44,566 bases of DNA from Basidiobolus meristosporus CBS 931.73 (lineage: Eukaryota > Fungi > Basidiobolomycota): positions 1-44,566 of the forward strand of contig MCFE01000691.1 in the NCBI GenBank assembly GCA_002104905.1, read 5' to 3'. The position numbers were made by a program, and so were the translations under genes. Below the pieces are notes generated by a model, which saw only the letters and a list, made by a program, of their open reading frames with translations, searched no databases and was not told the DNA's origin. This document shows positions 4,637 to 44,566 of this stretch, one piece after another. The stretch's first letter is position 1, and each line of letters begins with the position of its first letter.

Positions 4637-6081
4637 TCATTGCTGCCCCTTGGAGAACTGGATCACCGCATACTTGCCGGAGACCATCCAATCGGCGTCG
4701 ACCTGCTCCAGTTCCTCCGCTTGGCCCTCCTTCAGGCCAACAATCACGTCGCTCTTGTTCGTTCTCAATGCGCACAAGGCAGGGAAACCCTGCTCGGTGG
4801 CGAGTGGCCCGATGGCGGTGGTGAACGGAGTGACCGTGGGCCACGCGCAGTCATACACAAGCTTGCGGTAGTTCAGGTCGCCTTTGAATAGCAGCAGGGA
4901 TGACCGGCAAAGGCCCTCATAGAGGTCGGGTGCTTGGGATCGGATGTGGTAGAAGGCGTAGGGGGAGGTCCAGAACTTATGGCTCTGTAGCTCCCAGACC
5001 CCGGACTTGAGGTATTCGGCCCAGCGCTGCGCCAGGTCATGCAGCCTTGCGTCTTGTGCCTCGCCGAACCCGGCAAGACAGGTTTGGATGGTCCACATGA
5101 AATCCACTTCGGTGGTGTCCGAGACAAACCATGGATCGGCTTTGCAGTGGAAGTGGATTTTGGAGGCGTACTGCTTGTGGATAAGCCAGTCGGCTAAGAT
5201 CAGATCGCCAAACAACTCGAACCCTTCAATGGTAAAACTGGTTAGCCCGCTGACAGAGGGGACGGTCTGAATGGAGTCCTCTACAAACCAGCATTGTCCA
5301 GAACAAAATCGATCCTTGCGTTCTTCAACGTCTCCACCTTCTTCCACATGGGCTCGAGGTCGTTAGCGAGGATGTACTTCTCGGCATCCTCCTTTCCTTT
5401 CTGCAGCTTCTCTATATCCTCAGCCTTCAGGTTGACCAGCAGCGACAGGTCGGTCTGGTTTCCCCACAGCGAGATCAAGGCCAGTTCGTAGAAGGTCTCC
5501 TGTACGGCTGAACCGGGAACCTTGAAGAGCGAGTCGGCTCTTTTGGCTAGCTCGAGGACTGCTGTGCGAGAGGCCATAAAGGTGGCTTCCTTTTGCCGGG
5601 TAAATGGATCATAGCTCTTCCAGTGCTTGGACAGGCGAAAGATCTCGCGGATGCGACGGTAAAGATAGCACTCGGAAAACAGCCAGGTGGCCTTGAACCA
5701 GGTCTGACCGTCGAAATGGGTATGCAGGCAATCGTTCCAGAGGGAAACGTCGGTGTCACCATCCTCCTTGATGTCTCTATCAAAGGAAACGGGTCAGAAA
5801 CAGAGTGGAGGCCGGCCCTCACACGCACAGGCCTACCTTAGCTGACGGTCTCTTTGGAGTTCGTAACGTAGTTCGCCGATATCTGAGATGATGGCTTTCG
5901 CCTCAGTCTTCTTCTCGACATTCTCCGCCTCATCCGGCAGTGCGTTGTAGGAACGATACAAGTCGTCAACGATCTTGGTCACAATCACCGGGAGTCTGTC
6001 CTTGATGGTTGTGTAGGCAAAGGTGCCCAGAGCCACCCCAGAAAGTGGCTTGCAAGGTGGATTGGCTGGGCTGGTGGACAT
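4637..6081 (-). CDS. ARMT1/DUF89 damage-control phosphatase family protein, multi-exon
   Basis: ATG 6081. FAYTTIKDRLPVI, SLWGNQTDLSL, FVLDNAG|FELFGDL, KADPWFVSD, FKGDLNYRKL and RTNKSDVIVGL are DUF89 hallmarks. Confidence 0.92.
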
Positions 6082-6124
6082 TTCGAAGGCAAGCCGGTGT
6101 TCGATGATATGCCGCAACTAATAT

Positions 6125-6152
6125 CTGCTGATCGTATCCTGCTGATCGTATC
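6125..6152. repeat. Perfect tandem duplication of CTGCTGATCGTATC (2 x 14 bp)
   Basis: Read directly, about 45 bp upstream of the ARMT1 start codon. Confidence 0.9.
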
Positions 6153-6529
6153 ACCCCAACAAAAGGCCAGGGCTTAATCGATGAATCTCGATCAATCCTT
6201 TGCGATCAACCAGTTGCATGCCCAGTGATATGACGTTGATTTACCAAATGCCCTCGCACTGCCATGACCAGACGTAATTGGTTTGGCCATGTTCAACAGC
6301 TCACCCACCACTCGGACAGCATTTGGCTCGAATCCAGCGGCTGTGGTAAACCAATGTCGATTGACGGGCATGTGACCAGATTCGCAACCACTGCTGAAGA
6401 CACTAGGATATAATGTCTAGCCTTCTGATTTAGTAGTCACTGGAGATTCGTATACAATATTGACAGGAAATTTTATTTCGTGATTTCATTGCCGATTTCA
6501 TTACCGGGTTTTCAGAAGCGTCAGCATTC

Positions 6530-6556
6530 TCCTCTCCTCTCCTCTCCTCTCCTCTC
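6530..6556. repeat. (CTCCT)n microsatellite
   Basis: About five tandem CTCCT units in the ARMT1-PPZ intergenic region. Confidence 0.85.
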
Positions 6557-6787
6557 TTAATTCTACCGTCCTCCTCGTTGAGGCACTTTGTATGCTCTGT
6601 CACACAAGTAGCCAACCCAAGTAAGGCCCATTTCCGCTCCCTGATCTGCCGCTCTCACCATTCTTTTGTGTGCATCCCGAGTCTCCTTCAATACTAACCC
6701 TCCTCAATACAGCAGCTCCACACACCCACGCACACGTACACGCACACACACACGCACACGCACTCCTAGTAGCTTGTCTTCCGCTCC

Positions 6788-8076
6788 ATGGGAAACAATT
6801 CCTCCAAAAAATCCAAGGGTACCTCCGACAACGAGGCTCCAGTTGGAAGGTCGCGAAGGGGCTCCATCCCCTTTATCGACAACTTCAAAAGCAACGGGGA
6901 TTCCGAAGCGAATGCCAACACCCTCGAATCGATCCTTGTGCGGCGCAGAAGTTCCGTCGGCAGCAACGAGCTCGGGGTGGACGCGCCCACCACGCCCACC
7001 AGAAACTCCTTCATCTCACTATCACGACGCGGAAGCTCCGACAGACGCCGGTCCCTGAATGTGGACGATATGATCAGTCGATTACTGGAGTCCGGCTATT
7101 CCGGAACTGTCCCCAAAATCCCGTGTTTAAAGGAGACCGAGATCATGGCGGTTTGCGAGGCAGCCCGGGAGATATTCCTGTCGCAGCCAACGCTAGTCGA
7201 GATCTCGTCCCCGGTGAAGATCGCCGGAGACATCCACGGGCAGTTCACGGACCTCCTGCGCCTCTTCGACATGTGCGGCTTCCCGCCCACCGCCAACTTC
7301 CTCTTCCTTGGGGACTATGTGGATCGAGGGCGCCAGAGTCTCGAGACGATTCTGCTCCTGCTGTGCTACAAAATCAAATACCCCGAGAATTTCTTTCTGC
7401 TCAGAGGCAACCACGAATGCGCCAATGTCACTCGAGGTATGATTGTTCACACATGGGGTGCGTCCTTCTTGTGTTAAGTGTATTTTCTGTAGTGTACGGC
7501 TTCTTTGACGAATGCAAACGGAGATGTAGCATCAAGATCTGGAAGACCTTCATCAATGTGTTCGACACCCTGCCCATAGCCGCCCTCGTTGCTGGCAAGA
7601 TCTTCTGTGTCCACGGGGGGCTTTCGCCGCATCTTCATCATATGGACGACATCCGGAAGATCGAGCGTCCGACCGATGTCCCGGACGAAGGCCTGCTGAT
7701 AGATCTGCTTTGGAGCGATCCCAGTGAGACGGTTGCCGACTGGGAGGACAACGAGCGAGGCGTGTCCTACTGTTTCGGGAAAACGATTGTAAACGAGTTC
7801 CTTGCCACGCACGAACTGGACCTCGTATGCCGGGCCCACATGGTGGTGGAGGATGGCTACGAATTCTTCAACGGCCGCACACTAGTGACGGTGTTTTCCG
7901 CGCCCAATTACTGCGGAGAATTCGACAACTACGGAGCGGTGATGAGCGTGAATGAGGACCTGCTGTGTAGCTTCGAGTTGCTGAAGCCTGTAGATACGCC
8001 CAAACTCCGCCCGGGAAGCCTGCAAGGGGCCCCCTCGTCCCCGCCAGCTCAAGACGCGAAAGCGTCTTCGTTGTAG
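6788..8076 (+). CDS. PPZ1: PP1-family Ser/Thr phosphatase, PPZ type
   Basis: Starts MGNNSSK (N-myristoylation-like). PPP motifs GDIHGQ, GDYVDRG and RGNHE. PPZ-type ANVTR|VYGF across the 56-nt intron at 7437-7492, plus [13 protein letters not shown] and [11 protein letters not shown]. Confidence 0.9.
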
Positions 8077-8259
8077 AGCAGCCAAAATAGAGATTGTCAC
8101 ATATACGTAGATTTCGATATGTTTCCCCCTTTTTGTACACTCCACTCCACCCCTATAGTTCTACTCTGTTTTTCTCCATATTCTCCTCAATATCCACCAC
8201 TCACACGCTTTAACTAAAAGAATGCTTTATTGAACCTAAAGAACCCGCACACAGATGGT

Positions 8260-10497
8260 TCATTGGTGCGCACTCAACATGCGCGCACAATCGAAGTCCC
8301 ATTTGGCTCGCCATTGATTGGCCTTGCACTGCTCCTTAGTCCACGGGTAACCGTAGGTGATTGGGCTGAATATCAGGTAAACGTAGAGCACGGTGAGCAT
8401 CATGGTGAGCACGAGCATGGTTCGTGCTCTGAAGTGCAGGGGGCGAATCAGGTGGTCCAGAGTTGTGCACGTCAGCAGGATTGCGAAATACAACGCCGGT
8501 AGATAATGATGAAGGAAAAGCTGACGTGACATCAGGAAGAATGGGAGGAAGTGCAGGGCCCAGCCCACGAAGTAGAGCCCCACCGAGGATAACCAACGAT
8601 GTAGCGTGTCTAGGTTGGGGGTTAGTGAGAGTCGTGTTGCACTCCGGTTCAATTACCACTTACCATCTTGGTAGCCACGCTGGCGACGAAGCACCAGGAT
8701 CCCTCCGAAGAAGCCGCTGAGTCCCAGACACAGGGTGGTGATCCACCAAACGACTGGGTTGCCCAGGAGATAGACTTGTGAATGCTCCTTTCCCCAGAAA
8801 CTTATCCCTCGCCTCAGCAAGGGCCAATCAGCAGGCCGAGAGCCATATGGATGATACGACGCCAGCCCGGCATTGATCTTCCACATGGTCCGGTGGAGCT
8901 CGGTGAACTTTTGCAGGAAGCTCTGGTGCGGGTAGTTCGCTTTGGCGGAGTCTTCGGGCAGACGTGCGTCGGTGACCGTGTCGACCATCCACAGAGTCTT
9001 GGCTGGTTTGGCCTGTCTCATGCAGGCGACCTCCAGCTGGTCGAATCCCCATTTGGGCAGCTTTTTCTCGCTGGAGTAGAGATCACAGCTCATCCGGGTG
9101 TGGACCAGCTTGAATTTGCTGTGGAACGCCATGAGCCGGTCTGCGGACTCCGGGACGTCCCTGTCATGGTCGTATATGACCACCTTCCAGAGATCATTGT
9201 CGTCTCCCCACTCGTAGCCGCTGACCTCGAAATGGATCTTGCTATTGCTGACCGGGGCTTTAACGCTGTGGCTGTGCAAGCGTTTGTTGGTGACCGAGTG
9301 CAGCAGACGTACTACGTCCCCGTTTTTCACCCACTCGAGGCCGGTTTGAGTGGTGTTCGTCTTGGCCTTGGTGATGACCCAGTCGTTGTGATAGTCTCGA
9401 TGGGAATACAATGTGACCTGTTGCTGCCGACTTCCCGATGGGTAGAAGTGTGGGTGGGAATGAAGATACCCGCTATTCGTGGCCACATGACGGATCTTGA
9501 GCTTGGCTCCGTAGGCGATGTCCCGCAAGGTGTCAGGAATGCTCCCACCCTGGAGCGAGCTACGGAACTGCGGCGACATGAAGCCGTTGCCAGTCCCACT
9601 CTTGGCCAGCCACATGAGATGCACCTGAAACAAAGACATGTAAATCGCGCCAGGCAGGAGAATCAGACACACACCTCGGGCCAGGAGCTCTCTCGCGAAG
9701 CGACTGGGGGTGATCGAGAGGTCTCCGATCAGATCCCACAGTTGGGCTAGGGTCGAGACTCCTATGGTGGCGTAGAGGAAAAGACCGACCCATTTGACAC
9801 TGCCGGTCAGCCCGAGCGAGACCCCGGTGGCAGTTAACCAGAACCACCACTTCGCAGTGAACGGGGTGGTGAGTTGGTTCTGAAAATGAACCCACGCGAG
9901 TATAGTGAGCGCGGTGAAGAACACCAGGGGAGAGTCTAGGAGTATGTGGCGGAACTGGGCAGTGTACGAGTTCTCAAAGGTGACTACGAAGGCGCCCAGT
10001 GATGCAGCCAGGTGGGAGCAGTGGGCACCGCGTAACGTAAAGTAAGCAATGGGAACAAGTAGCCAGCCTAGCACGGCAGGGAGCAGGCGCATGGCAACAT
10101 AGGGCACGTTCGGCTCGACGTAATCCAAGCCAATCTTCTCGAACATGAAGCTACCGTCGAAGCCTGTGACATAGCCGACGGCCGCAATCATCATCTTCGC
10201 CAGCGGCGGATGAACATCCATGAAAAACTCGCGTTTGATGTACTTGCTAGCGAACCCGCCGAAATGGACCTCGTCAAACACCACAGAACTGGGCTCCGAT
10301 ATCCGGTAGAATCGCACCAGCGCAGCGATCAAGGTGATGGCCGAAACCACCGCCAGGTGGGATGGGCGAACGGTGGCCGGAGCGGACGCTTCGAACCCCT
10401 TCAACTTCCCATTGTTGTCAAGCTCGACCGCCCCGTGAAAGTCCACCCCCTTGTCAAGATTCTTGCGTTTACGCACCGAGGGTACAATTGCCACCAT
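8260..10497 (-). CDS. PMT1: Dolichyl-phosphate-mannose protein O-mannosyltransferase, PMT1 subfamily
   Basis: VVFDEVHFGGFASKY...MDVHPPLAKM, MIR domains (YLHSHPHFY, RLHSH, QLEVAC), C-terminal LFLHHYLPALYF. One short intron near 8610-8663. The start is taken as the first in-frame ATG (10497); the ORF-track start at 10569 is TTG. Confidence 0.93.
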
Positions 10498-10798
10498 CCG
10501 AAGAGGAAAAGTATGGCGGAAAAATAAAGCAGCTGGACTGGAAAGTGGCGTATATTTATTCGGATTCAATCATATAAACATTGACGTGCACCATTGACAA
10601 CAACTTCTTATTTTTATGACTGTTGATGCCTAGTGCCTGCCAATCGTTGCGAGATGCTATGACAACGGTCAAGCTAAAATTAGCCAGAAGAGGATGCTTT
10701 TAATTTTGTATAGAGACTGTATATTAAATTGTACTGCTCCCTGAGGATTACGTGATGGGAGGAAGAAAGGTATATGTGAGCGTGATAGCAAGACGGCA

Positions 10799-13653
<2,855 letters not shown>

Positions 13654-13984
13654 GTGTTTATCCAGCGAAGTACAGACAGAGGAGGGAAATATGTCTACAG
13701 GTCAGGAAGCGGCTTTATCAAATAAAGATAAAATCGTTTCGGGCTTATTTAATGCTGGATTTGGTGTTAAATCAAGCAGGCAATTTGATTAGCACCTGCC
13801 AGACCATTTGCCCCAAACGCAATGCCCATTCCCAGCGCACAATCAAGTCTAGATCAGAGTGACGCGTTGGGTCTGATTGCTGCCAGCACCGGTCGAGAAT
13901 GGGGGGAGATTGATCTACACTGGTGAATATTCCATATTTCAGATGAGCAGGAACCCTTGAGCCCAAGCACTTTATTTTTGAACT

Positions 13985-14947
13985 ATGACTATTGACCAAG
14001 TCCCCGTTCTCCCACCAGCCCAGCCCGCACCCATGTCCCTTCCAGAACTATCCAAACTCTCTCTCGAGCAAACAAGCGAATCACACCCTGTCTCCGAACC
14101 AGATCCACACGGAGGGGACCAACCTCAGTCCCGAGCAGACCCAAGCCCCCAAGAGGAGGACGACATGGTCACAGTGTTCACCGATCCGGCCAACTTCAAC
14201 GTCAAGCATCCTTTAAATAGCTCTTGGATACTCTGGTACGACAATCCTGGGAAAAAGACCAACCAGCACAGTTGGTCCCAAAACTTGAAGCAGATCATTT
14301 GCTTCGACACAGTCGAGGATTTCTGGGGGTAATGTTCTTAGCCACCCACGCTGCTCAGCGTTGACAACTAAACCGAACCCATTTCCTTTCTCTACGCGCA
14401 GAATATGGAACAATCTGATTCCGATCAGCGACCTGAGCGCCGGCTCGAATTACCACTTCTTCAAAGAAGGGATCAAACCCATGTGGGAAGACCCAGCCAA
14501 CGACAAGGGAGGAAAGTGGGTTATTCAGCTACCGAGGAAGACAGGGGAGCAAATCAATCAGCTCTGGCTTTACACGGTATGTTCGGTGTGTTGTTGCCCA
14601 GTGGGCTAGGGGTATTGATTCCGGTCTGTGCAGGTTCTCTCATGTATAGGCGAATCCTTTGCCTACGAGGATGAGATCTGTGGCTGTGTTGCGTCCATCC
14701 GTAAAGGCTTCTACCGGCTGGCTCTGTGGACTCGGTCTTCTGATGACCAGGAGATATGTCTATCTATTGGGTATGTACTTTGCTCACAGTATCGCTCAGA
14801 GCCACTCAACGAACAAGCCGTTTTACTCTCTGTAGGACACATCTGAAGGAGACATTGTCCCTTGGGCCCAACCAAAGCCTAGGCTTCCAGGCACACTCCG
14901 ATGCATCCAGAAGTGGCTCGTTCAAGAAAGACCGCTTTGTTGTTTAA
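13985..14947 (+). CDS. Translation initiation factor eIF4E (class I), 4 exons
   Basis: KHPLNSSWILWYD, TVEDFWG, NYHFFKEGIKPMWED, GGKW, LWLYT and YRLALWTR; the conserved Trp set is present. Canonical introns. Confidence 0.96.
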
Positions 14948-15082
14948 CCACAATCCCCTAGTCAGATAAACCATCAACAAACCCCATTCAATGAAAATGT
15001 AGATGTAAATGAATGCCATTTCAATGTTTAGTTTAAGGTGGCGACATGGAGCAATTAGTTGGATTACAATTTATACAGCATT

Positions 15083-17359
15083 TTACGATTGTCCAACGGA
15101 TGGAAGCAAATCAATAGCCACGGCCTCCATATTCTGAAATATACTGACCATTTCCTGCTTGTCCGGAGGTTGCGGTGTTGCTTGGGTGTTGCTTGGGGTG
15201 TTGCTTGGGTATTCATTGTATCTCTGAGGGGGATAATAACTGTTGCCTGGCTGAGAGTAGGGAGGATACGCTGCGGAGGCGGCTTGTTGGCCGTAGGCCT
15301 CCCCGCCGCTTGAAATTGACTGGCTGCGCTGTTGGTGAGGCCTGTAAGGATCCATAGAGCCTTCGGGTGGGTAGACGGAGCCTGGTCTGGTCTGTGCTGC
15401 GGTGCTTCCGTATGAATAGCTGTTGCTTCGGCTGAGAGATGGGTTGTACATCGGCTGGGGCGGGTACTGTCCATACGCCGAGTCTCGAGAGAGATTGGCA
15501 GGTAAATAGGGATTAGCTTGATGTCGGGCTAGGATGCTGATAAATAACTCAGTCGAGCAAAGCAGATTTGGATATGAACCAATACTCACTGTTGCCGTAT
15601 CTAGCTACTGACGACTCCATCAAATTGTTGTAGGTCGACCGAGCTTCGTGAAACTTCTCGTTCAGCCCAATCAAATCATCTAGAACCTTTGGCTCAGTAA
15701 CTGCAAACCAGCTGGTGATCAATGCCCCCCACTAACCTTTCTTACGGCCATAAGACCCGATCAACTTGACCAACTTTGGGCGCAGGGAGAGGGAAATGTT
15801 GTAAAGTGTCTGTGATGGACCAAGGGTTACCAACCACCATCCATGGTGTACGCACGGGCACGCTTGTTTACCTGAAGCTCTTCGTTCTCCGTCAAGTGGT
15901 CCCTGTGAGGGTCGATTTTACCGAGCACCTGGAGCAACCTATCAACGTTATGCGCCTCAGCCATGACCTCTTCCTCATCCTCCTGGTGGGGCGAGGAGCC
16001 ATGTTGCGATTCTGGTAGCTTTTCCTAAGGCGAAGCCTGAATCAACGGAACCGCTAAGGCGAACTACAGTGATGCTGTGCAACTTACAACATAGTTTACT
16101 GGGAAGATCCCAATTCGACCCCTTAAATCACCTTTCCACCACTCCTTGTACTTGGTCTCGACAACTGTGATTACATCCCCCTTGTAAAACCCTAGCTCTC
16201 CGCTCTCGGTAGCCTTGAAGTCAAAGAGAGCTCTAACCCGGGTGGCCTCTAGCGACTGCTTAGGCTCGATTTTCTGAAAAATATGGTCACGCACCATTCA
16301 CACACCAAAAACGTAACGCGTTAAGAGAGGCAATACCTTCGCTTGGGCTCCATTGTTCGTGGCAGCGCCTGTGTATGCGCTACGCTGCTGAAATAAATTT
16401 CCATTAGCATTTGCGTGCTCCCGAACGATGGTTCATGAACTCGTTATTTACATAATTTTTGCGACTTTCATTCTCTGATAGCGATAACGCCAATGCAAGC
16501 TGTAGCTCGTCTTCCTCCTTAAGCTTATCCAATTCGGACTAGAAATTCGCCTATATGAGTCTCGTTCACTTTGGAATCATGTATGAGGTAGACAACACAG
16601 TACCTGCGTAGGCTTTTTGGGGGCTTGGGGTGTGGGAAATTGGTAATCTAAAGAGAGGTTGAGAAATCAAGAACAGCACCTCCACATAGCAGAAAGAAGC
16701 ATACTTTGTTCTCTCAGTTGGGAATATGTCTCTTGCATTAAGCTCAAGGTGGAATCATTGCGAAATTCGAAATTCCATTGTTGGATAAGTTCAAGTATTC
16801 TGTTCTTAACGAGCTCGTGGACATTCTACGAACGAAAAAATATTAAGTACTTCCTCCACGGCGGCTACTGTTGATGCTGAATATGTCTGCTTACACGATC
16901 ATTTAACATTCGAACGAGGTGAGTGGTGAAGGCCCTAGAGCAGATTTCCCGATGCACTTCGATTCCGCAGTTTTTTACCAAAGCCTCCGTCAGCTACAGG
17001 AGGGGATGTGAGCCATCATGGAGAACTCTCAAGTAAAGTCTATGCGCTTACAGTCAAAGCATAAAGAAGCACATTGGCGTTACGATGTGTCAAACGTTTG
17101 GAGACCGCAGCGACACAATCTCTGCCTCTGTATACCAAATAATTAGAGGGCCTTCGCGTGAAGATGCTACAACTGCTTCTTACCCGTTGGCGGTTTTATT
17201 GACTCTGTCGCAGACGGCCAAAATGAGCTCCCAATCATCAGACGTTAGATTCTCACTAGTAGCATTGGCTAGTGAGAGTTAATTAGCAGCACGATCCAAC
17301 GAAAATAGCTAGCTGTACTTACCAACTGCCTCATCAAAAGGATTAGCATTCCGAAACAT
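15083..17359 (-). CDS. HSE1: ESCRT-0 subunit Hse1/STAM (VHS-UIM-SH3), multi-exon
   Basis: ATG 17359 MFRNANPFDEAV. VHS: ATSENLTSDDWELILAVCD, VKNCG. UIM: EEDELQLALALSLSE. SH3: VRALFDF...WWKGDLRGRIGIFPVNYV. P/Q/Y-rich tail. Confidence 0.93.
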
Positions 17360-18946: not shown

Positions 18947-19114
18947 GTTCAATTTGCTGTTTAGTTGTGATAGGCTGCTCACATTGTTGTTTAGCTATTC
19001 AATTTCCTGTTTAGTTGTGATAGGCTGTTCACATTGTTGTTTAGCTATTCAATTTCCTGTTTAGTTGTGATAGGCTGTTCACATTGTTGTTTAGCTATTC
19101 AATTTCCTGTTTAG
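18947..19114. repeat. 50-bp tandem repeat, 3 full copies plus a partial
   Basis: Unit TTGTGATAGGCTGTTCACATTGTTGTTTAGCTATTCAATTTCCTGTTTAG starts at 18965, 19015 and 19065, with one mismatch in copy 1. Confidence 0.95.
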
Positions 19115-19365: not shown

Positions 19366-20595
19366 ATGTCGCTTCACCTTGGTCGTCTTCTGGTTTGTCC
19401 ACCGAGAGCGAGGTTTTCTTCTCTTTCCACCATAAGGCAGGTTAAATTCTCCACCCTTCACTCTAGATATGCTTTCTCGAGAACGCTATTCGGTCAAAAA
19501 GGCTGCATTCAAGGGATCCCAGGAGTAAGGACTAGAGAGAGAGCCTTTCTCCCGTGCATAACGGAAATACGCTCCACCGTATTGCATTCCACCATCCCAC
19601 AAGAGGAGGAGAATACTCCAGTGATTGCTGATAAAGCCGGAGTAAGATGGAAGCCTATGCCAGAGTTAACCCTTGCCAAGCTACCCCAAGTTTACAAAGA
19701 GCTATCGAAAGCAAAGCTTGCCGCCCTGGTAGCTTTGACCACCATGTGTGGCTATGCTGTCGCTCCAGAAGCTGTAAATCTCACCACCATGTTTTGGACT
19801 ACAATTGGCACCACCCTTTGCATCAGCTCGGCCAACGCATTCAATCAATGGGTAGAGATACCATACGATGCGCAAATGAGTAGAACTCGCAATAGAGTTC
19901 TAGTACGCCATGCTGCCTCGCCGCTTCACGCATTTGCATTCGGGTCTGTCACTGGCTTATCCGGTATCAGCATGTTGGCGTTTGGTGTGAGTCCGTTAGT
20001 CGCCGCGTTAGGTGCGGCCAACATAGTTCTTTACTCGGCCATCTACACGCCACTCAAACGTATCTCCATTGCCAACACTTGGGTAGGAGCCATCGTAGGC
20101 GGCATCCCACCCATGATGGGCTGGGCTGCTTGCACAAATGGCTTAGAGCCGGGGGCTTGGTTGCTCGGATTTATTTTGTACGCGTGGCAATTTCCCCACT
20201 TCAATTCATTGAGCTGGAATCTGCGTGCTGATTACTCCAAAGCCGGGTTTAGAATGATGGCAGTGACGGATCCTGCACTTAATGCGCGTGTATCTCTGCG
20301 CTACAGTCTTGCATTACTCCCACTATCCTGTATAGCACCCATGCTTGACGTCACTACCTGGTGGTTTGCGGCGGATTCATTCGTGGTCAATGCAATCCTG
20401 GCTCATGGGGCATGGCGTTTCTGGAGGCATTCGGACGAAAAGACAGCCCGAAAGCTGTTCTTCGGCTCTCTCATCCATCTCCCACTCATCCTTGCTCTGT
20501 TGATGATTCATAAGAAGAGCAAAAATGAGGAGCAAAAGAAGCTACCGTATGCCGAGCTGAAAAACGCGCAAATCATCAAGCGAGAATTGAGCTGA
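19366..20595 (+). CDS. COX10: Protoheme IX farnesyltransferase (heme O synthase), single exon
   Basis: NAFNQWVEIPYDAQMSRTRNRVL, YTPLKR, WVGAIVGGIPPMMGWAA and WQFPHFNSLSW. Confidence 0.97.
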   Translation: MSLHLGRLLVCPPRARFSSLSTIRQVKFSTLHSRYAFSRTLFGQKGCIQGIPGVRTRERAFLPCITEIRSTVLHSTIPQEEENTPVIADKAGVRWKPMPELTLAKLPQVYKELSKAKLAALVALTTMCGYAVAPEAVNLTTMFWTTIGTTLCISSANAFNQWVEIPYDAQMSRTRNRVLVRHAASPLHAFAFGSVTGLSGISMLAFGVSPLVAALGAANIVLYSAIYTPLKRISIANTWVGAIVGGIPPMMGWAACTNGLEPGAWLLGFILYAWQFPHFNSLSWNLRADYSKAGFRMMAVTDPALNARVSLRYSLALLPLSCIAPMLDVTTWWFAADSFVVNAILAHGAWRFWRHSDEKTARKLFFGSLIHLPLILALLMIHKKSKNEEQKKLPYAELKNAQIIKRELS

Positions 20596-33933: not shown

Positions 33934-34263
33934 AGTTCAATTTTTGTAGCGATTTCAATGTATAGTCACCACTTCCCCAACATTCTATAGCCAGACACAC
34001 ATATGCTGGCTTCTTTCCAGCCAGCCACCATGTAAATAACGACTAGATTCTACGCCGGGGAGTCTGGAGCCGCCACCTTCAAAAGCACGGTCGCCTCCCT
34101 CGAGAACTGTCCAGAAATACCGATGATGCATCCTCACTCACCCACCATTACCCGGCAAAGGACGGCTGGGCCCCAGGGGTGGAGGGATCTGGCGCAGAGC
34201 ATATCCACAACCCATCACCATGATAGGCCAAAAGCGGGGAGTGAGAAAAATGAAAAATAAATG

Positions 34264-34334
34264 TGCGCTAGCTGGGAGTCGAACCCAGGCCAACTGCTTG
34301 GAAGGCAGTTATTCTACCGCTATACTACTAGCGC
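34264..34334 (-). tRNA. tRNA-Gly(TCC)
   Basis: GCGCTAG acceptor stem, ACTGC-CT-TCC-AA-GCAGT anticodon arm, GGTTCGACTC T-loop, downstream oligo-T. Confidence 0.96.
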
Positions 34335-34679
34335 CTGTTAGTTATATAAAAAATTAGAAATAATATTCTATTAATTTTAATTGGTACTACTGGCAATGCT
34401 TTCCGGCAAACCTGTCGGACAGCCTCCCTAACTTACATCCAAATCCTTGGATAGTATGCCAACAATCAATGATCGGGCTCAGCCTGGATACAACCATGAA
34501 AAATCGAATAAGGCATGTATCCAAAGGGGGAGGGACGAACCAAAAAAGGGACCATTTCCCTTGTACGAAAGTAGGGAGTTGTGTAGGAATGAGCATCCTC
34601 ATCGAATAGGCAATGTAAAAGCGATAGATTCTAGTGAAACAAAAGGTGTACAGATATAGAAGTTAAAAAGAAAAAGTAT

Positions 34680-34752
34680 CGCCCAAAGGGGGGCTCGAAC
34701 CCCCGACCCTAAGATTAAAAGTCTCATGCTCTACCGACTGAGCTATTCGGGC
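34680..34752 (-). tRNA. tRNA-Lys(TTT)
   Basis: GCCCGAATAGCTCAGTCGGTAGAGC, TGAGA-CT-TTT-AA-TCTTA, GGTTCGAGCC; intronless. Confidence 0.96.
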
Positions 34753-35109
34753 TCACACAATCTAGTGAGATCTATGTATATGAATACCTTCAAATAATAT
34801 GTACGCATACATGCACACGTATGTGCTCCAATATAGCAAAACCAATTTCCCAGCCATACCACTGTTAGCTGGACAGTCACCTCCACCTCCTACTAGAGCC
34901 TGCCACTTGTCTGCAGCGGAATGATACACAAACGCTGATGTGAATTGGGTTAGGGGATTCATGAAATACAAAGCCACGGAGACCTATACCTACCAGGCCT
35001 ACGCCAGTAACAGGTATAACCTCTGAGCCATTCCCCATGGAAGAACTACCGTGTGGGAAGTAATCATAGGGCTATAAGAATTTTCTACAAAGAGTACATC
35101 ATCAGTAAT

Positions 35110-35191
35110 GACACTTTGGCGGAGTGGTTAACGCGGTGCCCTGCTAAGGCATTTCCCTATGGGAGCGCAGGTTCGAATCCTGCAGGTGTCG
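35110..35191 (+). tRNA. tRNA-Ser(GCT)
   Basis: 82 nt with a long variable arm (TTCCC-TAT-GGGAG), TGCC-CT-GCT-AA-GGCA and GGTTCGAATCC; T6 terminator. Confidence 0.96.
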
Positions 35192-35201
35192 TTCCTTTTT
35201 T
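35192..35201 (+). terminator. Pol III oligo-T terminator after tRNA-Ser (representative)
   Basis: TTCCTTTTTT directly follows the tRNA. Each of the nine tRNAs has a run of at least 4 T shortly downstream on its own strand. Confidence 0.8.
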
Positions 35202-35808
35202 TCATGTATTCTCATTGATACGAAATCATTTTAATGTATTGGAACAGCATTATCTTAGCAATGGTGGGGTATAGCATAGTAGATAGATAGTCTACTGGAG
35301 GTGCTGATGGCCGAGTTCAAATCACGGAGGATTGATAGCGGCCGGCTGTTTGGCCTTAGAAATAATACACCCGGTTATGCAAAAATTTTTCATAGTTGGC
35401 ATAGTGTTTGCTGGGCTCCCCAACTTTAAAATAATTCTCAATTTTTAGCCAACCCTAGACGTGAGACACAGATGTATAAAATGCAACCATGAAGCTACCA
35501 GGATTCCACAAAAGGCACCAGATACTTGTAACAAAGCAATTCGTTTCCTGCTTATGATTAGAAGTTTGATCTGATGCATGATATTGGAGCACCAAACCTC
35601 GTGACAAGGAGATACTATGGATCGCGTAATTTCATAGGAGACGCCATGGCAAGTTTCAAGCTTCAAAGAATGACAAGAAATGCGTATAGATCTCCAAAAC
35701 AGCCTATGTGGCAGGAGAGTAGATTAAAGCCAAGAGAATCGATCATACAGTCTTGGAGAGGAAACACAGCATGATAAACGGCAAGCGCAAGAAAGCTAGG
35801 TATATAAT

Positions 35809-35880
35809 TCCTCATTGGTCCAGTGGTTAGGATTTCTCGCTTTCACCGAGACGGCCGGGGTTCGATTCCCCGATGGGGAA
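35809..35880 (+). tRNA. tRNA-Glu(TTC)
   Basis: TCCTCAT/ATGGGGA acceptor, TCTCG-CT-TTC-AC-CGAGA, GGTTCGATTCC. Confidence 0.96.
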
Positions 35881-36252
35881 TAATCTTTTGTGTACTTTCG
35901 TTCATAGCTTTTTACTAAAGAGAAACGACCCGTTTCAATGGCAGTATACGGTAATTCTTGGGCGGACTCCTTCATGCGGGCCAAAAGCTGCCCATATATA
36001 AAAATAAATACAAACATATCCCACCAATATCCTATGTTGAAATATGGGCCCAGCCCCAGAGCGTCCAAGCGAGCTTACCTAAAGGTATTCCGAGGAGGTC
36101 CTGCCACAGAATGTGTGATCACCCTAGCGAAATGAGAGCAAGAATTCTCGGCTGTCACAAAATCTACATCGAGTACAGCACACAAGTAACCATCCGTTAG
36201 TATACAAACTTACAGTATGCCAATAGCTTATTTGCCAAAAAAGTAAAATACT

Positions 36253-36326
36253 CACCCCCGGTGGGACTCGAACCCACAATCCTCAGATTAGAAGTCTGAT
36301 GCCTTATCCAATTAGGCCACGGGGGC
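36253..36326 (-). tRNA. tRNA-Arg(TCT)
   Basis: GCCCCCG acceptor, TCAGA-CT-TCT-AA-TCTGA, GGTTCGAGTCC. Confidence 0.96.
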
Positions 36327-36674
36327 AATTAGTAACAGAAGAAGCGGTTGCGTGCTAAAGACTAAATCGATTTCCTATTTACCTTTCTAGACATTCTAAT
36401 GCAAAGGCATTGTACATGATATTCCACCTGTATTGGAGCTAAGTGCTCTTCCACTGTAGAAATTTATCTACAGTAGGCCTGAGCTCAAAAACAAACCAGT
36501 AGTATGCTATACTTTGCTCATCTTAGCAGAGTGCTCCAGATAGTCAGATTATGAACTCAGCATATTCTTACCAATAAGCAGTGCTATGAAGATAGAAGCT
36601 TATGTAGGCATTGCCTTCTACAAAAAAATCTACTTGACAGAAACGTAGACTGCAACCCGCCAGGTGCAAAAGAT

Positions 36675-36747
36675 TGCTCCCTGCCAGGATCGAACTGGCG
36701 ACCTTCAGATTATGAGACTAACGCGCTGCCAACTGCGCTAAGGAAGC
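36675..36747 (-). tRNA. tRNA-Met(CAT), elongator type
   Basis: TTAGT-CT-CAT-AA-TCTGA with the T-T 31:39 mismatch typical of fungal elongator Met. G1 start and a GTTCGATC T-loop, so not the initiator. Confidence 0.94.
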
Positions 36748-37048
36748 TTCTAAGCTACGGGGAAATTGGTTGCTATTTGTCATTTTTGAGTCTCCTGTAG
36801 TGGTACGAGAATGTACCACCAGCAGTTATGAATAGAGCCGGGCTCAATTGTACTCATCAGCGCTAATATCGATTTGAAACTCGAGCAAAAACCGGAGACT
36901 GCATATCCATGCTAGGTTCTTTGTATTGTCCATATAGTTACTCCTCTTCAATAGATACATAAAAACATACAATCCCTTGAGGAAGTGTAGTTGATATGTA
37001 ACAATGTACAATGGTTCACCGAAATACATCAAAAACCAAAAAGAGATC

Positions 37049-37120
37049 GGGCTCCAGCGGGAATTGAACCCGCGACCTCTCGCACCCAAAGCGAGAATCA
37101 TACTACTAGACCATAGAGCC
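37049..37120 (-). tRNA. tRNA-Pro(TGG)
   Basis: GGCTCTA acceptor, CTCGC-TT-TGG-GT-GCGAG, GGTTCAATTCC. Confidence 0.96.
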
Positions 37121-37286
37121 GGATTTATGGGTAGTAGCTTTACGATTTAGATCATTTTCAGTCCGTAGTAAACCATATAGTCAAAACGATCTCGGATTTT
37201 ACTTAATTTGTAGAGTCAGATCAAGGAGGAGAGATTCATTACCTCCAAAATATAGGTTTTCTCTACAAGAACTAAAATCAAAAGAG

Positions 37287-37358
37287 CTCTCAGACCGGGA
37301 ATTGAACCCGGGTCTCCCGCGTGACAGGCGGGGATACTTACCACTATACTATCTGAGA
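37287..37358 (-). tRNA. tRNA-Asp(GTC)
   Basis: TCTCAGA acceptor, CCCGC-CT-GTC-AC-GCGGG, GGTTCAATTCC. Confidence 0.95.
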
Positions 37359-37612
37359 TTACATATTTATTATGTACATACTTTTCTGCACAAACCTAAT
37401 ACTCTATATTATGGCGGAGCTCCGCCAAAAACTGCATAATCCTACGTAAACGAATGGTAGGGGAATCCTCTTGAATATCTGGGAACACGGAAATAAAAAT
37501 ACTAATCCATACTCTGATAGATCGAGTTACCCTTCTGGAAACCCATATGATGCTATTAAAAAGGACAGTGATAAAAAAAGTCCTGGTAAATGCTGAATCC
37601 CAACAAAAGATG

Positions 37613-37684
37613 AGGTCTCGCCGAGAATCGAACTCGGATTACAGGATTCAAAGTCCTGGGTGCTAACCATTACACCACGAAACC
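37613..37684 (-). tRNA. tRNA-Gln(TTG)
   Basis: GGTTTCG/CGAGACC acceptor, CAGGA-CT-TTG-AA-TCCTG, AGTTCGATTC. Confidence 0.96.
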
Positions 37685-38020
37685 GCCTTTGTTTCATGTA
37701 AAAATTTGTAGCGATTTCAATGTATAGTCACCACTTCCCCAACATTCTATAGCCAGACACACATATGCTGGCTTCTTTCCAGCCAGCCATCCATGTAAAT
37801 AACGACTAGATTCTACGCCGGGGAGTCTGGAGCCGCCACCTTCAAAGCACGTCGCTCCTCGAGAACTGTCCAGAAATACCGATGATGCATCCTCACTCGT
37901 GATCTAGCATATACTGGTGGCTGGCTGAAAGAGCAGCATATGTGTGTCTGGCTATAGAATGTTGGGGGAAGTGGTGACTATACATTGAAATCGCTACAAA
38001 TTTTTACATGAAACAAAGGC

Positions 38021-38092
38021 GGTTTCGTGGTGTAATGGTTAGCACCCAGGACTTTGAATCCTGTAATCCGAGTTCGATTCTCGGCGAGACCT
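38021..38092 (+). tRNA. tRNA-Gln(TTG)
   Basis: Inverted copy of 37613-37684. Confidence 0.95.
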
Positions 38093-38346
38093 CATCTTTT
38101 GTTGGGATTCAGCATTTACCAGGACTTTTTTTATCACTGTCCTTTTTAATAGCATCATATGGGTTTCCAGAAGGGTAACTCGATCTATCAGAGTATGGAT
38201 TAGTATTTTTATTTCCGTGTTCCCAGATATTCAAGAGGATTCCCCTACCATTCGTTTACGTAGGATTATGCAGTTTTTGGCGGAGCTCCGCCATAATATA
38301 GAGTATTAGGTTTGTGCAGAAAAGTATGTACATAATAAATATGTAA

Positions 38347-38418
38347 TCTCAGATAGTATAGTGGTAAGTATCCCCGCCTGTCACGCGGGAGACCCGGGTT
38401 CAATTCCCGGTCTGAGAG
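38347..38418 (+). tRNA. tRNA-Asp(GTC)
   Basis: Inverted copy of 37287-37358. Confidence 0.95.
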
Positions 38419-38584
38419 CTCTTTTGATTTTAGTTCTTGTAGAGAAAACCTATATTTTGGAGGTAATGAATCTCTCCTCCTTGATCTGACTCTACAAATT
38501 AAGTAAAATCCGAGATCGTTTTGACTATATGGTTTACTACGGACTGAAAATGATCTAAATCGTAAAGCTACTACCCATAAATCC

Positions 38585-38656
38585 GGCTCTATGGTCTAGT
38601 AGTATGATTCTCGCTTTGGGTGCGAGAGGTCGCGGGTTCAATTCCCGCTGGAGCCC
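38585..38656 (+). tRNA. tRNA-Pro(TGG)
   Basis: Inverted copy of 37049-37120. Confidence 0.95.
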
Positions 38657-38957
38657 GATCTCTTTTTGGTTTTTGATGTATTTCGGTGAACCATTGTACA
38701 TTGTTACATATCAACTACACTTCCTCAAGGGATTGTATGTTTTTATGTATCTATTGAAGAGGAGTAACTATATGGACAATACAAAGAACCTAGCATGGAT
38801 ATGCAGTCTCCGGTTTTTGCTCGAGTTTCAAATCGATATTAGCGCTGATGAGTACAATTGAGCCCGGCTCTATTCATAACTGCTGGTGGTACATTCTCGT
38901 ACCACTACAGGAGACTCAAAAATGACAAATAGCAACCAATTTCCCCGTAGCTTAGAA

Positions 38958-39030
38958 GCTTCCTTAGCGCAGTTGGCAGCGCGTTAGTCTCATAATCTGA
39001 AGGTCGCCAGTTCGATCCTGGCAGGGAGCA
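38958..39030 (+). tRNA. tRNA-Met(CAT), elongator type
   Basis: Inverted copy of 36675-36747. Confidence 0.94.
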
Positions 39031-39378
39031 ATCTTTTGCACCTGGCGGGTTGCAGTCTACGTTTCTGTCAAGTATATTTTTTTGTAGAAGGCAATGCCTA
39101 CATAAGCTTCTATCTTCATAGCACTGCTTATTGGTAAGAATATGCTGAGTTCATAATCTGACTATCTGGAGCACTCTGCTAAGATGAGCAAAGTATAGCA
39201 TACTACTGGTTTGTTTTTGAGCTCAGGCCTACTGTAGATAAATTTCTACAGTGGAAGAGCATTTAGCTCCAATACAGGTGGAATATCATGTACAATGCCT
39301 TTGCATTAGAATGTCTAGAAAGGTAAATAGGAAATCGATTTAGTCTTTAGCACGCAACCGCTTCTTCTGTTACTAATT

Positions 39379-39452
39379 GCCCCCGTGGCCTAATTGGATA
39401 AGGCATCAGACTTCTAATCTGAGGATTGTGGGTTCGAGTCCCACCGGGGGTG
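39379..39452 (+). tRNA. tRNA-Arg(TCT)
   Basis: Inverted copy of 36253-36326. Confidence 0.95.
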
Positions 39453-39824
39453 AGTATTTTACTTTTTTGGCAAATAAGCTATTGGCATACTGTAAGTTTG
39501 TATACTAACGGATGGTTACTTGTGTGCTGTACTCGATGTAGATTTTGTGACAGCCGAGAATTCTTGCTCTCATTTCGCTAGGGTGATCACACATTCTGTG
39601 GCAGGACCTCCTCGGAATACCTTTAGGTAAGCTCGCTTGGACGCTCTGGGGCTGGGCCCATATTTCAACATAGGATATTGGTGGGATATGTTTGTATTTA
39701 TTTTTATATATGGGCAGCTTTTGGCCCGCATGAAGGAGTCCGCCCAAGAATTACCGTATACTGCCATTGAAACGGGTCGTTTCTCTTTAGTAAAAAGCTA
39801 TGAACGAAAGTACACAAAAGATTA

Positions 39825-39896
39825 TTCCCCATCGGGGAATCGAACCCCGGCCGTCTCGGTGAAAGCGAGAAATCCTAACCACTGGACCAATGAGGA
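39825..39896 (-). tRNA. tRNA-Glu(TTC)
   Basis: Inverted copy of 35809-35880. Confidence 0.95.
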
Positions 39897-40513
39897 ATTA
39901 TATACCTAGCTTTCTTGCGCTTGCCGTTTATCATGCTGTGTTTCCTCTCCAGAACTGTATGATCGATTCTCTTGGCTTTAATCTACTCTCCTGCCACATA
40001 GGCTGTTTTGGAGATCTATACGCATTTCTTGTCATTCTTTGAAGCTTGAAACTTGCCATGGCGTCTCCTATGAAATTACGCGATCCATAGTATCTCCTTG
40101 TCACGAGGTTTGGTGCTCCAATATCATGCATCAGATCAAACTTCTAATCATAAGCAGGAAACGAATTGCTTTGTTACAAGTATCTGGTGCCTTTTGTGGA
40201 ATCCTGGTAGCTTCATGGTTGCATTTTATACATCTGTGTCTCACGTCTAGGGTTGGCTAAAAATTGAGAATTATTTTAAAGTTGGGGAGCCCAGCAAACA
40301 CTATGCCAACTATGAAAAATTTTTGCATAACCGGGTGTATTATTTCTAAGGCCAAACAGCCGGCCGCTATCAATCCTCCGTGATTTGAACTCGGCCATCA
40401 GCACCTCCAGTAGACTATCTATCTACTATGCTATACCCCACCATTGCTAAGATAATGCTGTTCCAATACATTAAAATGATTTCGTATCAATGAGAATACA
40501 TGAAAAAAAGGAA

Positions 40514-40595
40514 CGACACCTGCAGGATTCGAACCTGCGCTCCCATAGGGAAATGCCTTAGCAGGGCACCGCGTTAACCACTCCGCCAAAGTGTC
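40514..40595 (-). tRNA. tRNA-Ser(GCT)
   Basis: Inverted copy of 35110-35191. Confidence 0.95.
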
Positions 40596-40952
40596 ATTAC
40601 TGATGATGTACTCTTTGTAGAAAATTCTTATAGCCCTATGATTACTTCCCACACGGTAGTTCTTCCATGGGGAATGGCTCAGAGGTTATACCTGTTACTG
40701 GCGTAGGCCTGGTAGGTATAGGTCTCCGTGGCTTTGTATTTCATGAATCCCCTAACCCAATTCACATCAGCGTTTGTGTATCATTCCGCTGCAGACAAGT
40801 GGCAGGCTCTAGTAGGAGGTGGAGGTGACTGTCCAGCTAACAGTGGTATGGCTGGGAAATTGGTTTTGCTATATTGGAGCACATACGTGTGCATGTATGC
40901 GTACATATTATTTGAAGGTATTCATATACATAGATCTCACTAGATTGTGTGA

Positions 40953-41025
40953 GCCCGAATAGCTCAGTCGGTAGAGCATGAGACTTTTAATCTTAGGGTC
41001 GGGGGTTCGAGCCCCCCTTTGGGCG
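40953..41025 (+). tRNA. tRNA-Lys(TTT)
   Basis: Inverted copy of 34680-34752. Confidence 0.95.
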
Positions 41026-41370
41026 ATACTTTTTCTTTTTAACTTCTATATCTGTACACCTTTTGTTTCACTAGAATCTATCGCTTTTACATTGCCTATT
41101 CGATGAGGATGCTCATTCCTACACAACTCCCTACTTTCGTACAAGGGAAATGGTCCCTTTTTTGGTTCGTCCCTCCCCCTTTGGATACATGCCTTATTCG
41201 ATTTTTCATGGTTGTATCCAGGCTGAGCCCGATCATTGATTGTTGGCATACTATCCAAGGATTTGGATGTAAGTTAGGGAGGCTGTCCGACAGGTTTGCC
41301 GGAAAGCATTGCCAGTAGTACCAATTAAAATTAATAGAATATTATTTCTAATTTTTTATATAACTAACAG

Positions 41371-41441
41371 GCGCTAGTAGTATAGCGGTAGAATAACTGC
41401 CTTCCAAGCAGTTGGCCTGGGTTCGACTCCCAGCTAGCGCA
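41371..41441 (+). tRNA. tRNA-Gly(TCC)
   Basis: Inverted copy of 34264-34334. Confidence 0.95.
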
Positions 41442-41590
41442 CATTTATTTTTCATTTTTCTCACTCACCCACCATTACCCGGCAAAGGACGGCTGGGCCC
41501 CAGGGGTGGAGGGATCTGGCGCAGAGCATATCCACAACCCATCACCATGATAGGCCAAAAGCGGGGAGTGAGAAAAATGAAAAATAAATG

Positions 41591-41661
41591 TGCGCTAGCT
41601 GGGAGTCGAACCCAGGCCAACTGCTTGGAAGGCAGTTATTCTACCGCTATACTACTAGCGC
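41591..41661 (-). tRNA. tRNA-Gly(TCC)
   Basis: Unit 3 copy with the same cloverleaf. Confidence 0.95.
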
Positions 41662-42005
41662 CTGTTAGTTATATAAAAAATTAGAATAATATTCTATTAA
41701 TTTTAATTGGTACTACTGGCAATGCTTTCCGGCAAACCTGTCGGACAGCCTCCCTAACTTACATCCAAATCCTTGGATAGTATGCCAACAATCAATGATC
41801 GGGCTCAGCCTGGATACAACCATGAAAAATCGAATAAGGCATGTATCCAAAGGGGGAGGGACGAACCAAAAAAGGGACCATTTCCCTTGTACGAAAGTAG
41901 GGAGTTGTGTAGGAATGAGCATCCTCATCGAATAGGCAATGTAAAAGCGATAGATTCTAGTGAAACAAAAGGTGTACAGATATAGAAGTTAAAAAGAAAA
42001 AGTAT

Positions 42006-42078
42006 CGCCCAAAGGGGGGCTCGAACCCCCGACCCTAAGATTAAAAGTCTCATGCTCTACCGACTGAGCTATTCGGGC
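42006..42078 (-). tRNA. tRNA-Lys(TTT)
   Basis: Unit 3 copy. Confidence 0.95.
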
Positions 42079-42435
42079 TCACACAATCTAGTGAGATCTA
42101 TGTATATGAATACCTTCAAATAATATGTACGCATACATGCACACGTATGTGCTCCAATATAGCAAAACCAATTTCCCAGCCATACCACTGTTAGCTGGAC
42201 AGTCACCTCCACCTCCTACTAGAGCCTGCCACTTGTCTGCAGCGGAATGATACACAAACGCTGATGTGAATTGGGTTAGGGGATTCATGAAATACAAAGC
42301 CACGGAGACCTATACCTACCAGGCCTACGCCAGTAACAGGTATAACCTCTGAGCCATTCCCCATGGAAGAACTACCGTGTGGGAAGTAATCATAGGGCTA
42401 TAAGAATTTTCTACAAAGAGTACATCATCAGTAAT

Positions 42436-42517
42436 GACACTTTGGCGGAGTGGTTAACGCGGTGCCCTGCTAAGGCATTTCCCTATGGGAGCGCAGGTTC
42501 GAATCCTGCAGGTGTCG
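42436..42517 (+). tRNA. tRNA-Ser(GCT)
   Basis: Unit 3 copy. Confidence 0.95.
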
Positions 42518-43133
42518 TTCCTTTTTTTCATGTATTCTCATTGATACGAAATCATTTTAATGTATTGGAACAGCATTATCTTAGCAATGGTGGGGTATAG
42601 CATAGTAGATAGATAGTCTACTGGAGGTGCTGATGGCCGAGTTCAAATCACGGAGGATTGATAGCGGCCGGCTGTTTGGCCTTAGAAATAATACACCCGG
42701 TTATGCAAAAATTTTTCATAGTTGGCATAGTGTTTGCTGGGCTCCCCAACTTTAAAATAATTCTCAATTTTTAGCCAACCCTAGACGTGAGACACAGATG
42801 TATAAAATGCAACCATGAAGCTACCAGGATTCCACAAAAGGCACCAGATACTTGTAACAAAGCAATTCGTTTCCTGCTTATGATTAGAAGTTTGATCTGA
42901 TGCATGATATTGGAGCACCAAACCTCGTGACAAGGAGATACTATGGATCGCGTAATTTCATAGGAGACGCCATGGCAAGTTTCAAGCTTCAAAGAATGAC
43001 AAGAAATGCGTATAGATCTCCAAAACAGCCTATGTGGCAGGAGAGTAGATTAAAGCCAAGAGAATCGATCATACAGTCTGGAGAGGAAACACAGCATGAT
43101 AAACGGCAAGCGCAAGAAAGCTAGGTATATAAT

Positions 43134-43205
43134 TCCTCATTGGTCCAGTGGTTAGGATTTCTCGCTTTCACCGAGACGGCCGGGGTTCGATTCCCCGATG
43201 GGGAA
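43134..43205 (+). tRNA. tRNA-Glu(TTC)
   Basis: Unit 3 copy. Confidence 0.95.
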
Positions 43206-43577
43206 TAATCTTTTGTGTACTTTCGTTCATAGCTTTTTACTAAAGAGAAACGACCCGTTTCAATGGCAGTATACGGTAATTCTTGGGCGGACTCCTTCAT
43301 GCGGGCCAAAAGCTGCCCATATATAAAAATAAATACAAACATATCCCACCAATATCCTATGTTGAAATATGGGCCCAGCCCCAGAGCGTCCAAGCGAGCT
43401 TACCTAAAGGTATTCCGAGGAGGTCCTGCCACAGAATGTGTGATCACCCTAGCGAAATGAGAGCAAGAATTCTCGGCTGTCACAAAATCTACATCGAGTA
43501 CAGCACACAAGTAACCATCCGTTAGTATACAAACTTACAGTATGCCAATAGCTTATTTGCCAAAAAAGTAAAATACT

Positions 43578-43651
43578 CACCCCCGGTGGGACTCGAACCC
43601 ACAATCCTCAGATTAGAAGTCTGATGCCTTATCCAATTAGGCCACGGGGGC
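43578..43651 (-). tRNA. tRNA-Arg(TCT)
   Basis: Unit 3 copy. Confidence 0.95.
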
Positions 43652-43999
43652 AATTAGTAACAGAAGAAGCGGTTGCGTGCTAAAGACTAAATCGATTTCC
43701 TATTTACCTTTCTAGACATTCTAATGCAAAGGCATTGTACATGATATTCCACCTGTATTGGAGCTAAATGCTCTTCCACTGTAGAAATTTATCTACAGTA
43801 GGCCTGAGCTCAAAAACAAACCAGTAGTATGCTATACTTTGCTCATCTTAGCAGAGTGCTCCAGATAGTCAGATTATGAACTCAGCATATTCTTACCAAT
43901 AAGCAGTGCTATGAAGATAGAAGCTTATGTAGGCATTGCCTTCTACAAAAAAATATACTTGACAGAAACGTAGACTGCAACCCGCCAGGTGCAAAAGAT

Positions 44000-44072
44000 T
44001 GCTCCCTGCCAGGATCGAACTGGCGACCTTCAGATTATGAGACTAACGCGCTGCCAACTGCGCTAAGGAAGC
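44000..44072 (-). tRNA. tRNA-Met(CAT), elongator type
   Basis: Unit 3 copy. Confidence 0.94.
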
Positions 44073-44373
44073 TTCTAAGCTACGGGGAAATTGGTTGCTA
44101 TTTGTCATTTTTGAGTCTCCTGTAGTGGTACGAGAATGTACCACCAGCAGTTATGAATAGAGCCGGGCTCAATTGTACTCATCAGCGCTAATATCGATTT
44201 GAAACTCGAGCAAAAACCGGAGACTGCATATCCATGCTAGGTTCTTTGTATTGTCCATATAGTTACTCCTCTTCAATAGATACATAAAAACATACAATCC
44301 CTTGAGGAAGTGTAGTTGATATGTAACAATGTACAATGGTTCACCGAAATACATCAAAAACCAAAAAGAGATC

Positions 44374-44445
44374 GGGCTCCAGCGGGAATTGAACCCGCGA
44401 CCTCTCGCACCCAAAGCGAGAATCATACTACTAGACCATAGAGCC
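44374..44445 (-). tRNA. tRNA-Pro(TGG)
   Basis: Unit 3 copy. Confidence 0.95.
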
Positions 44446-44566
44446 GGATTTATGGGTAGTAGCTTTACGATTTAGATCATTTTCAGTCCGTAGTAAACCA
44501 TATAGTCAAAACGATCTCGGATTTTACTTAATTTGTAGAGTCAGATCAAGGAGGAGAGATTCATTG

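Follow-up and report, generated by a model that had tools for sequence, protein, structure and literature searches.

Most rearrangements detected in long-read data are orphans supported by a single read, and non-tandem orphans in nanopore data often form zigzags that would imply a triplication and are regarded as probable artefacts (Frith & Khan 2018, PMC5829575). Reads carrying fold-back artefacts can also tangle assembly graphs (Heinz, Meyerson & Li 2026, PMC12870357). Strand-displacing polymerases also produce palindromic chimeras in vitro, as in multiple displacement amplification (MDA), with slightly offset arms that are joined in inverted orientation at short microhomology (10.1101/173872). 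Among genuine amplification products, those of origin-dependent inverted-repeat amplification (ODIRA) are inverted triplications in which the spacer of a short interrupted inverted repeat survives as a single-copy loop at each hinge (PMC4689423). Fork stalling and template switching (FoSTeS) or microhomology-mediated break-induced replication (MMBIR) gives duplication-inverted triplication-duplication (DUP-TRP/INV-DUP) structures, in which two switches leave an inverted middle copy and microhomology at a junction. The present analysis concerns a forward-inverted-forward arrangement, hereafter the zigzag, in a tandem array of tRNA genes of the fungus Basidiobolus meristosporus CBS 931.73 (assembly GCA_002104905.1, contig MCFE01000691.1). 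The window analysed is the entire contig (44,566 bp), whose right end is formed by the zigzag; the third repeat copy reaches base 44565.

An earlier note on this DNA proposed that forward sequence stops at CTCACTC (37892-37898), runs backwards for about 3.57 kb and resumes forward at 41467 with the base equivalent to 34140, and these coordinates were confirmed: the zigzag is truly present in the contig sequence. Positions 37912-41470 are the reverse complement of 37797-34236 (99.7% over 3,564 nt), 41460-44565 equals 34133-37240 at 99.87% with base 41467 corresponding to 34140, and 37705-37898 departs from 33943-34139 by five indels and no substitution. The further proposal that excising 37899-41466 restores a normal unit also holds, since joining 37705-37898 to 41467-44565 after removal of these 3,568 nt gives a sequence that is collinear with 33943-37240 and identical at 3,290 of 3,298 positions (99.7%). 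With independent switch points, base-exact restoration of the unit phase would be expected about once in 3,762 cases, indicating that the two switches are coupled rather than coincidental. The likely explanation, in our judgement, is a double template switch on one DNA molecule of the tandem tRNA-gene array, either an artefact or a rare somatic event, and the genome itself probably does not carry the zigzag as a fixed feature.

The array unit has a period of 3,762 bp (37705 aligns with 33943), and from 33943 rightward to the contig end only copies of this unit with its nine tRNA genes were found by BLAST self-comparison, ARAGORN and Rfam. ARAGORN and Rfam identify these genes as Gly-TCC, Lys-TTT, Ser-GCT, Glu-TTC, Arg-TCT, Met-CAT, Pro-TGG, Asp-GTC and Gln-TTG; within 34263-37684, where they are spaced ~250-620 bp apart, the plus strand carries Ser and Glu and the minus strand the other seven. 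Their Rfam scores are identical across all copies, so that each of the three carries intact genes. The head of the unit, ~310 nt at 33943-34252, has a guanine-cytosine (GC) content of 53% against 42% in the remaining unit and matched no Rfam family except the adjoining tRNA; it holds both the CTCACTC heptamer (S) and its inverted partner GAGTGAG (S'). The features of the arrangement, in order of position, are given below.

33943..37704, plus strand: unit 1, 3,762 bp, with unique flank adjoining on the left (BLAST self-comparison, ARAGORN, Rfam)
34133..34139, plus strand: CTCACTC heptamer (S) in unit 1, at unit positions 191-197, once per unit
34239..34245, plus strand: GAGTGAG (S'), inverted partner of S, 99 nt downstream of S, once per unit
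37705..37898, plus strand: start of unit 2 to switch point 1, 197 unit positions in 194 nt, ending in CTCACTC at 37892-37898
37790..37968, no strand: error burst surrounding switch point 1, with ~17 errors in 179 nt
37899..37911, minus strand: bridge after the heptamer, 13 nt, a noisy reverse complement of ~34032-34055, neither foreign DNA nor adapter
37912..41459, minus strand: inverted copy, reverse complement of 37797-34246, with nine intact tRNA genes in opposite orientation
41460..41466, plus strand: CTCACTC at switch point 2, where the inverted copy finishes (complement of S') and the third copy starts (S)
41460..44566, plus strand: third, forward copy, equal to 34133-37240, running into the contig end
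41467..41565, plus strand: loop of the second palindrome, 99 nt of single-copy ordinary unit sequence, equal to 34140-34238 (100%)
41566..41572, plus strand: GAGTGAG (S') of the third copy, closing the hinge stem

A polymerase that departs from its template and later resumes at the same place can account for the arrangement. While making the top-sense strand, it would halt once its 3' end had reached ...CTCACTC (unit position 197), and this end would jump to the complementary strand ~80 nt behind, guided by at most 4 nt of microhomology. Copying would then proceed backwards for 3.57 kb, starting at about unit position 113, until the only GAGTGAG of a unit, beside the tRNA-Gly terminator, is copied and the 3' end CTCACTC is thereby regenerated. 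The regenerated end would re-anneal at the vacated site of the original template and continue from position 198. Because a vacated site can be re-primed only by an identical end, the same heptamer would be expected at both switch points; likewise, the first GAGTGAG met on the backward path belongs to the preceding unit, 3.57 kb away, which would give the inverted length of 3,568 nt. Departure and return thus account for three features together, namely the heptamer at both switches, the base-exact restoration and the inverted length, and no site-specific enzyme or barrier is needed. The switch may have occurred in a rare nucleus or in vitro, through a polymerase used for library repair or sequencing. 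We infer that one or very few long reads carried the chimera into the assembly, thereby extending the contig into a collapsed repeat. The zigzag indeed lies at a contig end inside such a repeat, with 1.05 forward units before the inversion and no unique anchor beyond it, which is the position expected of a fold-back artefact.

An indirect sign of low read support comes from the first hinge. The burst of errors there amounts to ~9.5%, almost all of them 1-nt deletions and many in short runs of one base, while the inverted and third copies show only 2 differences over 3,006 nt (~0.07%); the excess at junction 1 is therefore ~100-fold over background (Fisher p = 4e-20). Junction 1 lies 3,956 nt from the unique flank, so that errors at the level of raw reads suggest that few reads can carry it, since a fixed junction at normal depth would be spanned by many uniquely placed reads and should have a better consensus than the interior of the repeat. 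The breakpoint itself is blurred by these errors. About one third of the bases are missing when the 13-nt bridge is aligned to the reverse complement of ~34032-34055, the loop accordingly measures ~80-85 nt instead of the 114 nt obtained from BLAST, and the microhomology comprises at most ACTC/GAGT (4 nt). We further infer from the assembled sequence the order of the two switches, the low read support and the origin from one molecule.

An interrupted inverted repeat that occurs naturally in the unit (CTCACTC, 99 nt, GAGTGAG) coincides with the second hinge, and the junction has 7 nt of microhomology that can be extended to 10 bp with one bulge. S' follows directly on the T-runs of the minus-strand tRNA-Gly gene, 17 nt beyond its 3' end. 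The earlier note had placed the heptamer at both switch points, and CTCACTC does occur at 37892-37898 and 41460-41466; the microhomology of hinge 1 does not exceed the 4 nt mentioned above. The two palindromes described there are present, one with arms 34236-37797 and 37912-41470 and a loop of ~80-85 nt, the other with arms 38465-41470 and 41563-44565 and a loop of 99 nt, the second being truncated by the contig end. The repeat formed by S and S' is unremarkable in itself, given that ~38 inverted pairs of 7 nt with a spacer of at most 150 nt exist per unit. In the predicted fold of single-stranded DNA, S pairs with S', with an energy that is not exceptional (z = 0.31 and -1.71); around the heptamer, Rfam recognised only tRNA and the fold z-scores revealed no exceptional structure. 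A scan of metagenomes with the 29-mer starting at the heptamer returned no match, and an exact look-up in a protein collection gave none for four open reading frames (ORFs) located on the unit or spanning junction 1.

Differences between the copies bear on which molecule was folded. The inverted and third copies differ from each other by indels only, as expected of consensus error in long-read assemblies. One site exists in three versions (GTCTTGG at 35752-35753, GTTCTGG at 39952-39954 and GTCTGG at 43077-43079), which points to consensus errors remaining within the repeat. Two substitutions, 36443 G>A and 36630 C>A, are common to the inverted and third copies and absent from unit 1, implying that the junction-bearing molecule is not simply a fold-back of unit 1. 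A rightward departure and return would predict an inverted copy templated by unit 1, and the substitutions disagree with this expectation. Judging from the sequence, the molecule that bears the junctions probably differs from the one joined to the flank, and would have come from elsewhere in the array and been overlapped onto unit 1.

Comparison with the systems described above shows partial resemblance to each. Like orphan zigzags and fold-back reads, the Basidiobolus arrangement is forward-inverted-forward within the span of one read and lies where nothing points to support by several reads, and such reads can tangle or extend assemblies (PMC5829575, PMC12870357). Unlike it, the orphan zigzags come from nanopore R9.4 data, PacBio orphans being described as 'fountain-like', and here support by a single read is probable rather than counted. 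The MDA chimeras share the inverted junctions at short microhomology and the small arm offset (10.1101/173872), but they are typically single fold-backs in amplified DNA. The zigzag resembles an ODIRA inverted triplication in its forward-inverted-forward order and, at hinge 2, in the retention of an interrupted-inverted-repeat spacer as a single-copy loop, an exact fit (PMC4689423); the third copy runs off the contig, so that neither an interstitial position nor retained distal sequence is apparent. The resemblance falls short of establishing an ODIRA product. ODIRA uses two independent pairs of inverted repeats on either side of an origin and retains the distal chromosome, whereas in Basidiobolus one heptamer serves both hinges, the amplicon is exactly one array period that is not known to hold an origin, and the contig lacks the distal sequence. 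The three copies also differ, unit 1 departing from the other two at positions 36443 and 36630, which argues against derivation from one segment, although later recombination with another unit could explain it.

The resemblance to DUP-TRP/INV-DUP products of FoSTeS/MMBIR lies in the two switches, the inverted middle copy and the junction microhomology. The classical human form, described by Carvalho et al. 2011 as cited in PMC4689423, reportedly involves one switch via long pre-existing inverted low-copy repeats and leaves duplicated flanks. In the zigzag, by contrast, synthesis returns to the very base that it left, and self-comparison found no long inverted repeat in the unit beyond those made by the event itself. 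The double template switch put forward in the earlier note is retained with respect to geometry, one junction lying on a short pre-existing interrupted inverted repeat as it does in products of ODIRA or MMBIR.

Several observations weigh against a switch confined to a single molecule. Junction 2 is clean. A real FoSTeS/MMBIR or ODIRA product formed in vivo would be expected to look alike in geometry and microhomology. No adapter is present at the hinges and both loops are genomic, which excludes the commonest PacBio palindrome artefact, namely a missed adapter. The public assembly of B. meristosporus CBS 931.73 was made from PacBio data (PMC7466969), which counts in favour of a chimera if the present contig belongs to it. 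Moreover, almost no fold-backs were found in the few PacBio sets that have been tested, which comprised HiFi, Iso-Seq and Mas-Seq and not the older chemistry (PMC12870357). If the contig is assembled correctly, the shared substitutions fit a fork moving leftward in vivo. A rival account is a fixed, genuine inverted triplication, in which a fork stalled in the second unit and underwent a double switch of the FoSTeS/MMBIR type, the errors at junction 1 reflecting poor local polishing. Its expectations of geometry, of 7 nt of microhomology and of asymmetric genomic loops agree with what is seen, and the absence of adapters is in keeping with it; the two substitutions would follow if a leftward fork folded onto DNA that it had just copied. 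Nevertheless, we regard a fixed triplication as unlikely: the ~100-fold higher error density falls exactly at junction 1 even though the unique flank is within 4 kb, a right-hand anchor is lacking, and the leftward version requires a return switch devoid of visible microhomology and leaves the length of the excursion unexplained.

A more elaborate proposal is that CTCACTC, beside the tRNA-Gly terminator, acts in each unit as a recurrent, site-specific fork barrier or nick site. Diverging forks would close there by fold-back and release either a 'dog bone' of unit length with hairpin caps or an inverted dimer of 7.3 kb, in the manner of ODIRA, and so amplify the unit. The involvement of one site in both hinges, the abutment of S' on an RNA polymerase III (Pol III) terminator and the forward-plus-inverted period of 7,327 nt, which is what a unit-length dog bone should give, speak for it, and tRNA genes are known sites of fork pausing. 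Hairpin loops derived from interrupted inverted repeats are, in addition, a prediction of the ODIRA model (PMC4689423). It seems very improbable all the same, as there is a single instance, in a unit not known to hold an origin, departure and return explain the shared site more simply, hinge 1 has no more than 4 nt of microhomology, the ~38 equivalent pairs per unit offer nothing to single out this one, and the fold energy is unexceptional. On this proposal the contig end would be a read of such an extrachromosomal element or of its integrated form. For much the same reasons the earlier suggestion that the array may amplify by site-specific fold-back is not supported: what exists is one instance at an unanchored contig end, probably carried by few reads, with the heptamer explained by departure and return and with an inverted copy that complements the third copy rather than unit 1. 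The least probable account dispenses with a chimeric molecule altogether and invokes an unsplit PacBio polymerase read with missed SMRTbell adapters, or a mis-join of opposite reads by an assembler or finisher. A contig end, a forward-inverted-forward order with constant period and poor quality at one hinge would all suit it, yet it is largely refuted. A missed adapter should leave symmetric arms meeting at the adapter, whereas the loops here are genomic and the arms offset by ~80-100 nt. In a comparison with an adapter sequence, which served as a plausibility check only, hinge 1 gave no adapter-like score above shuffles and hinge 2 only a genomic T/C-rich run. As for a mis-join, the unit head is no more self-complementary than its shuffles and offers nothing to seed an inverted overlap, so that at least one read must contain junction 1, a point that also stands to the credit of a fixed triplication.

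Two other mechanisms were rejected on geometric grounds. Simple inversion by recombination would exchange the sequences beside the hinges, but ~100 nt beside each hinge is present once and not exchanged, and the breakpoints do not match. A double-strand break at 197/198 followed by snap-back of a monomer conflicts with the fact that the template of hinge 2 must cross that position.

The left 34 kb of the contig carries ordinary fungal genes, including those for the complex I 75-kDa subunit, a protein O-mannosyltransferase, heme O synthase and a fasciclin protein. GC content steps from 50-57% in 1-16000 to 39-47% in 16000-44566, the latter including the gene-bearing stretch before the array, and a tandem repeat with a 50-bp period (~3.3 copies, 97-98% identical) occupies 18948-19114 in an AT-richer stretch. 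The heme O synthase ORF (19366-20595) shows at least 90% identity to KAK9728213.1 of Basidiobolus ranarum. The B. ranarum contig encoding that protein is 45,415 bp long, nearly the same size as the present contig, suggesting that both assemblies may break at the same repeats.

As it stands, the zigzag gives no evidence of special amplification of the array and, if the single-molecule template switch is correct, does not represent a programmed step of amplification; the final 6.7 kb of the contig, from 37899, is unfit as evidence for array architecture or copy number. What it does offer is a signature of departure and return, comprising the same short word at both switches, exact restoration on excision, and an excursion terminated by the first site able to regenerate the departing 3' end. 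Were the arrangement fixed in the genome, it would represent a neat natural inverted triplication inside a tandem tRNA array and a hint that Pol III arrays grow by replication-based fold-back besides unequal crossover. Should an ODIRA-like process prove to be responsible, it would amount to a fold-back route for the expansion of Pol III gene arrays in an early-diverging fungus.

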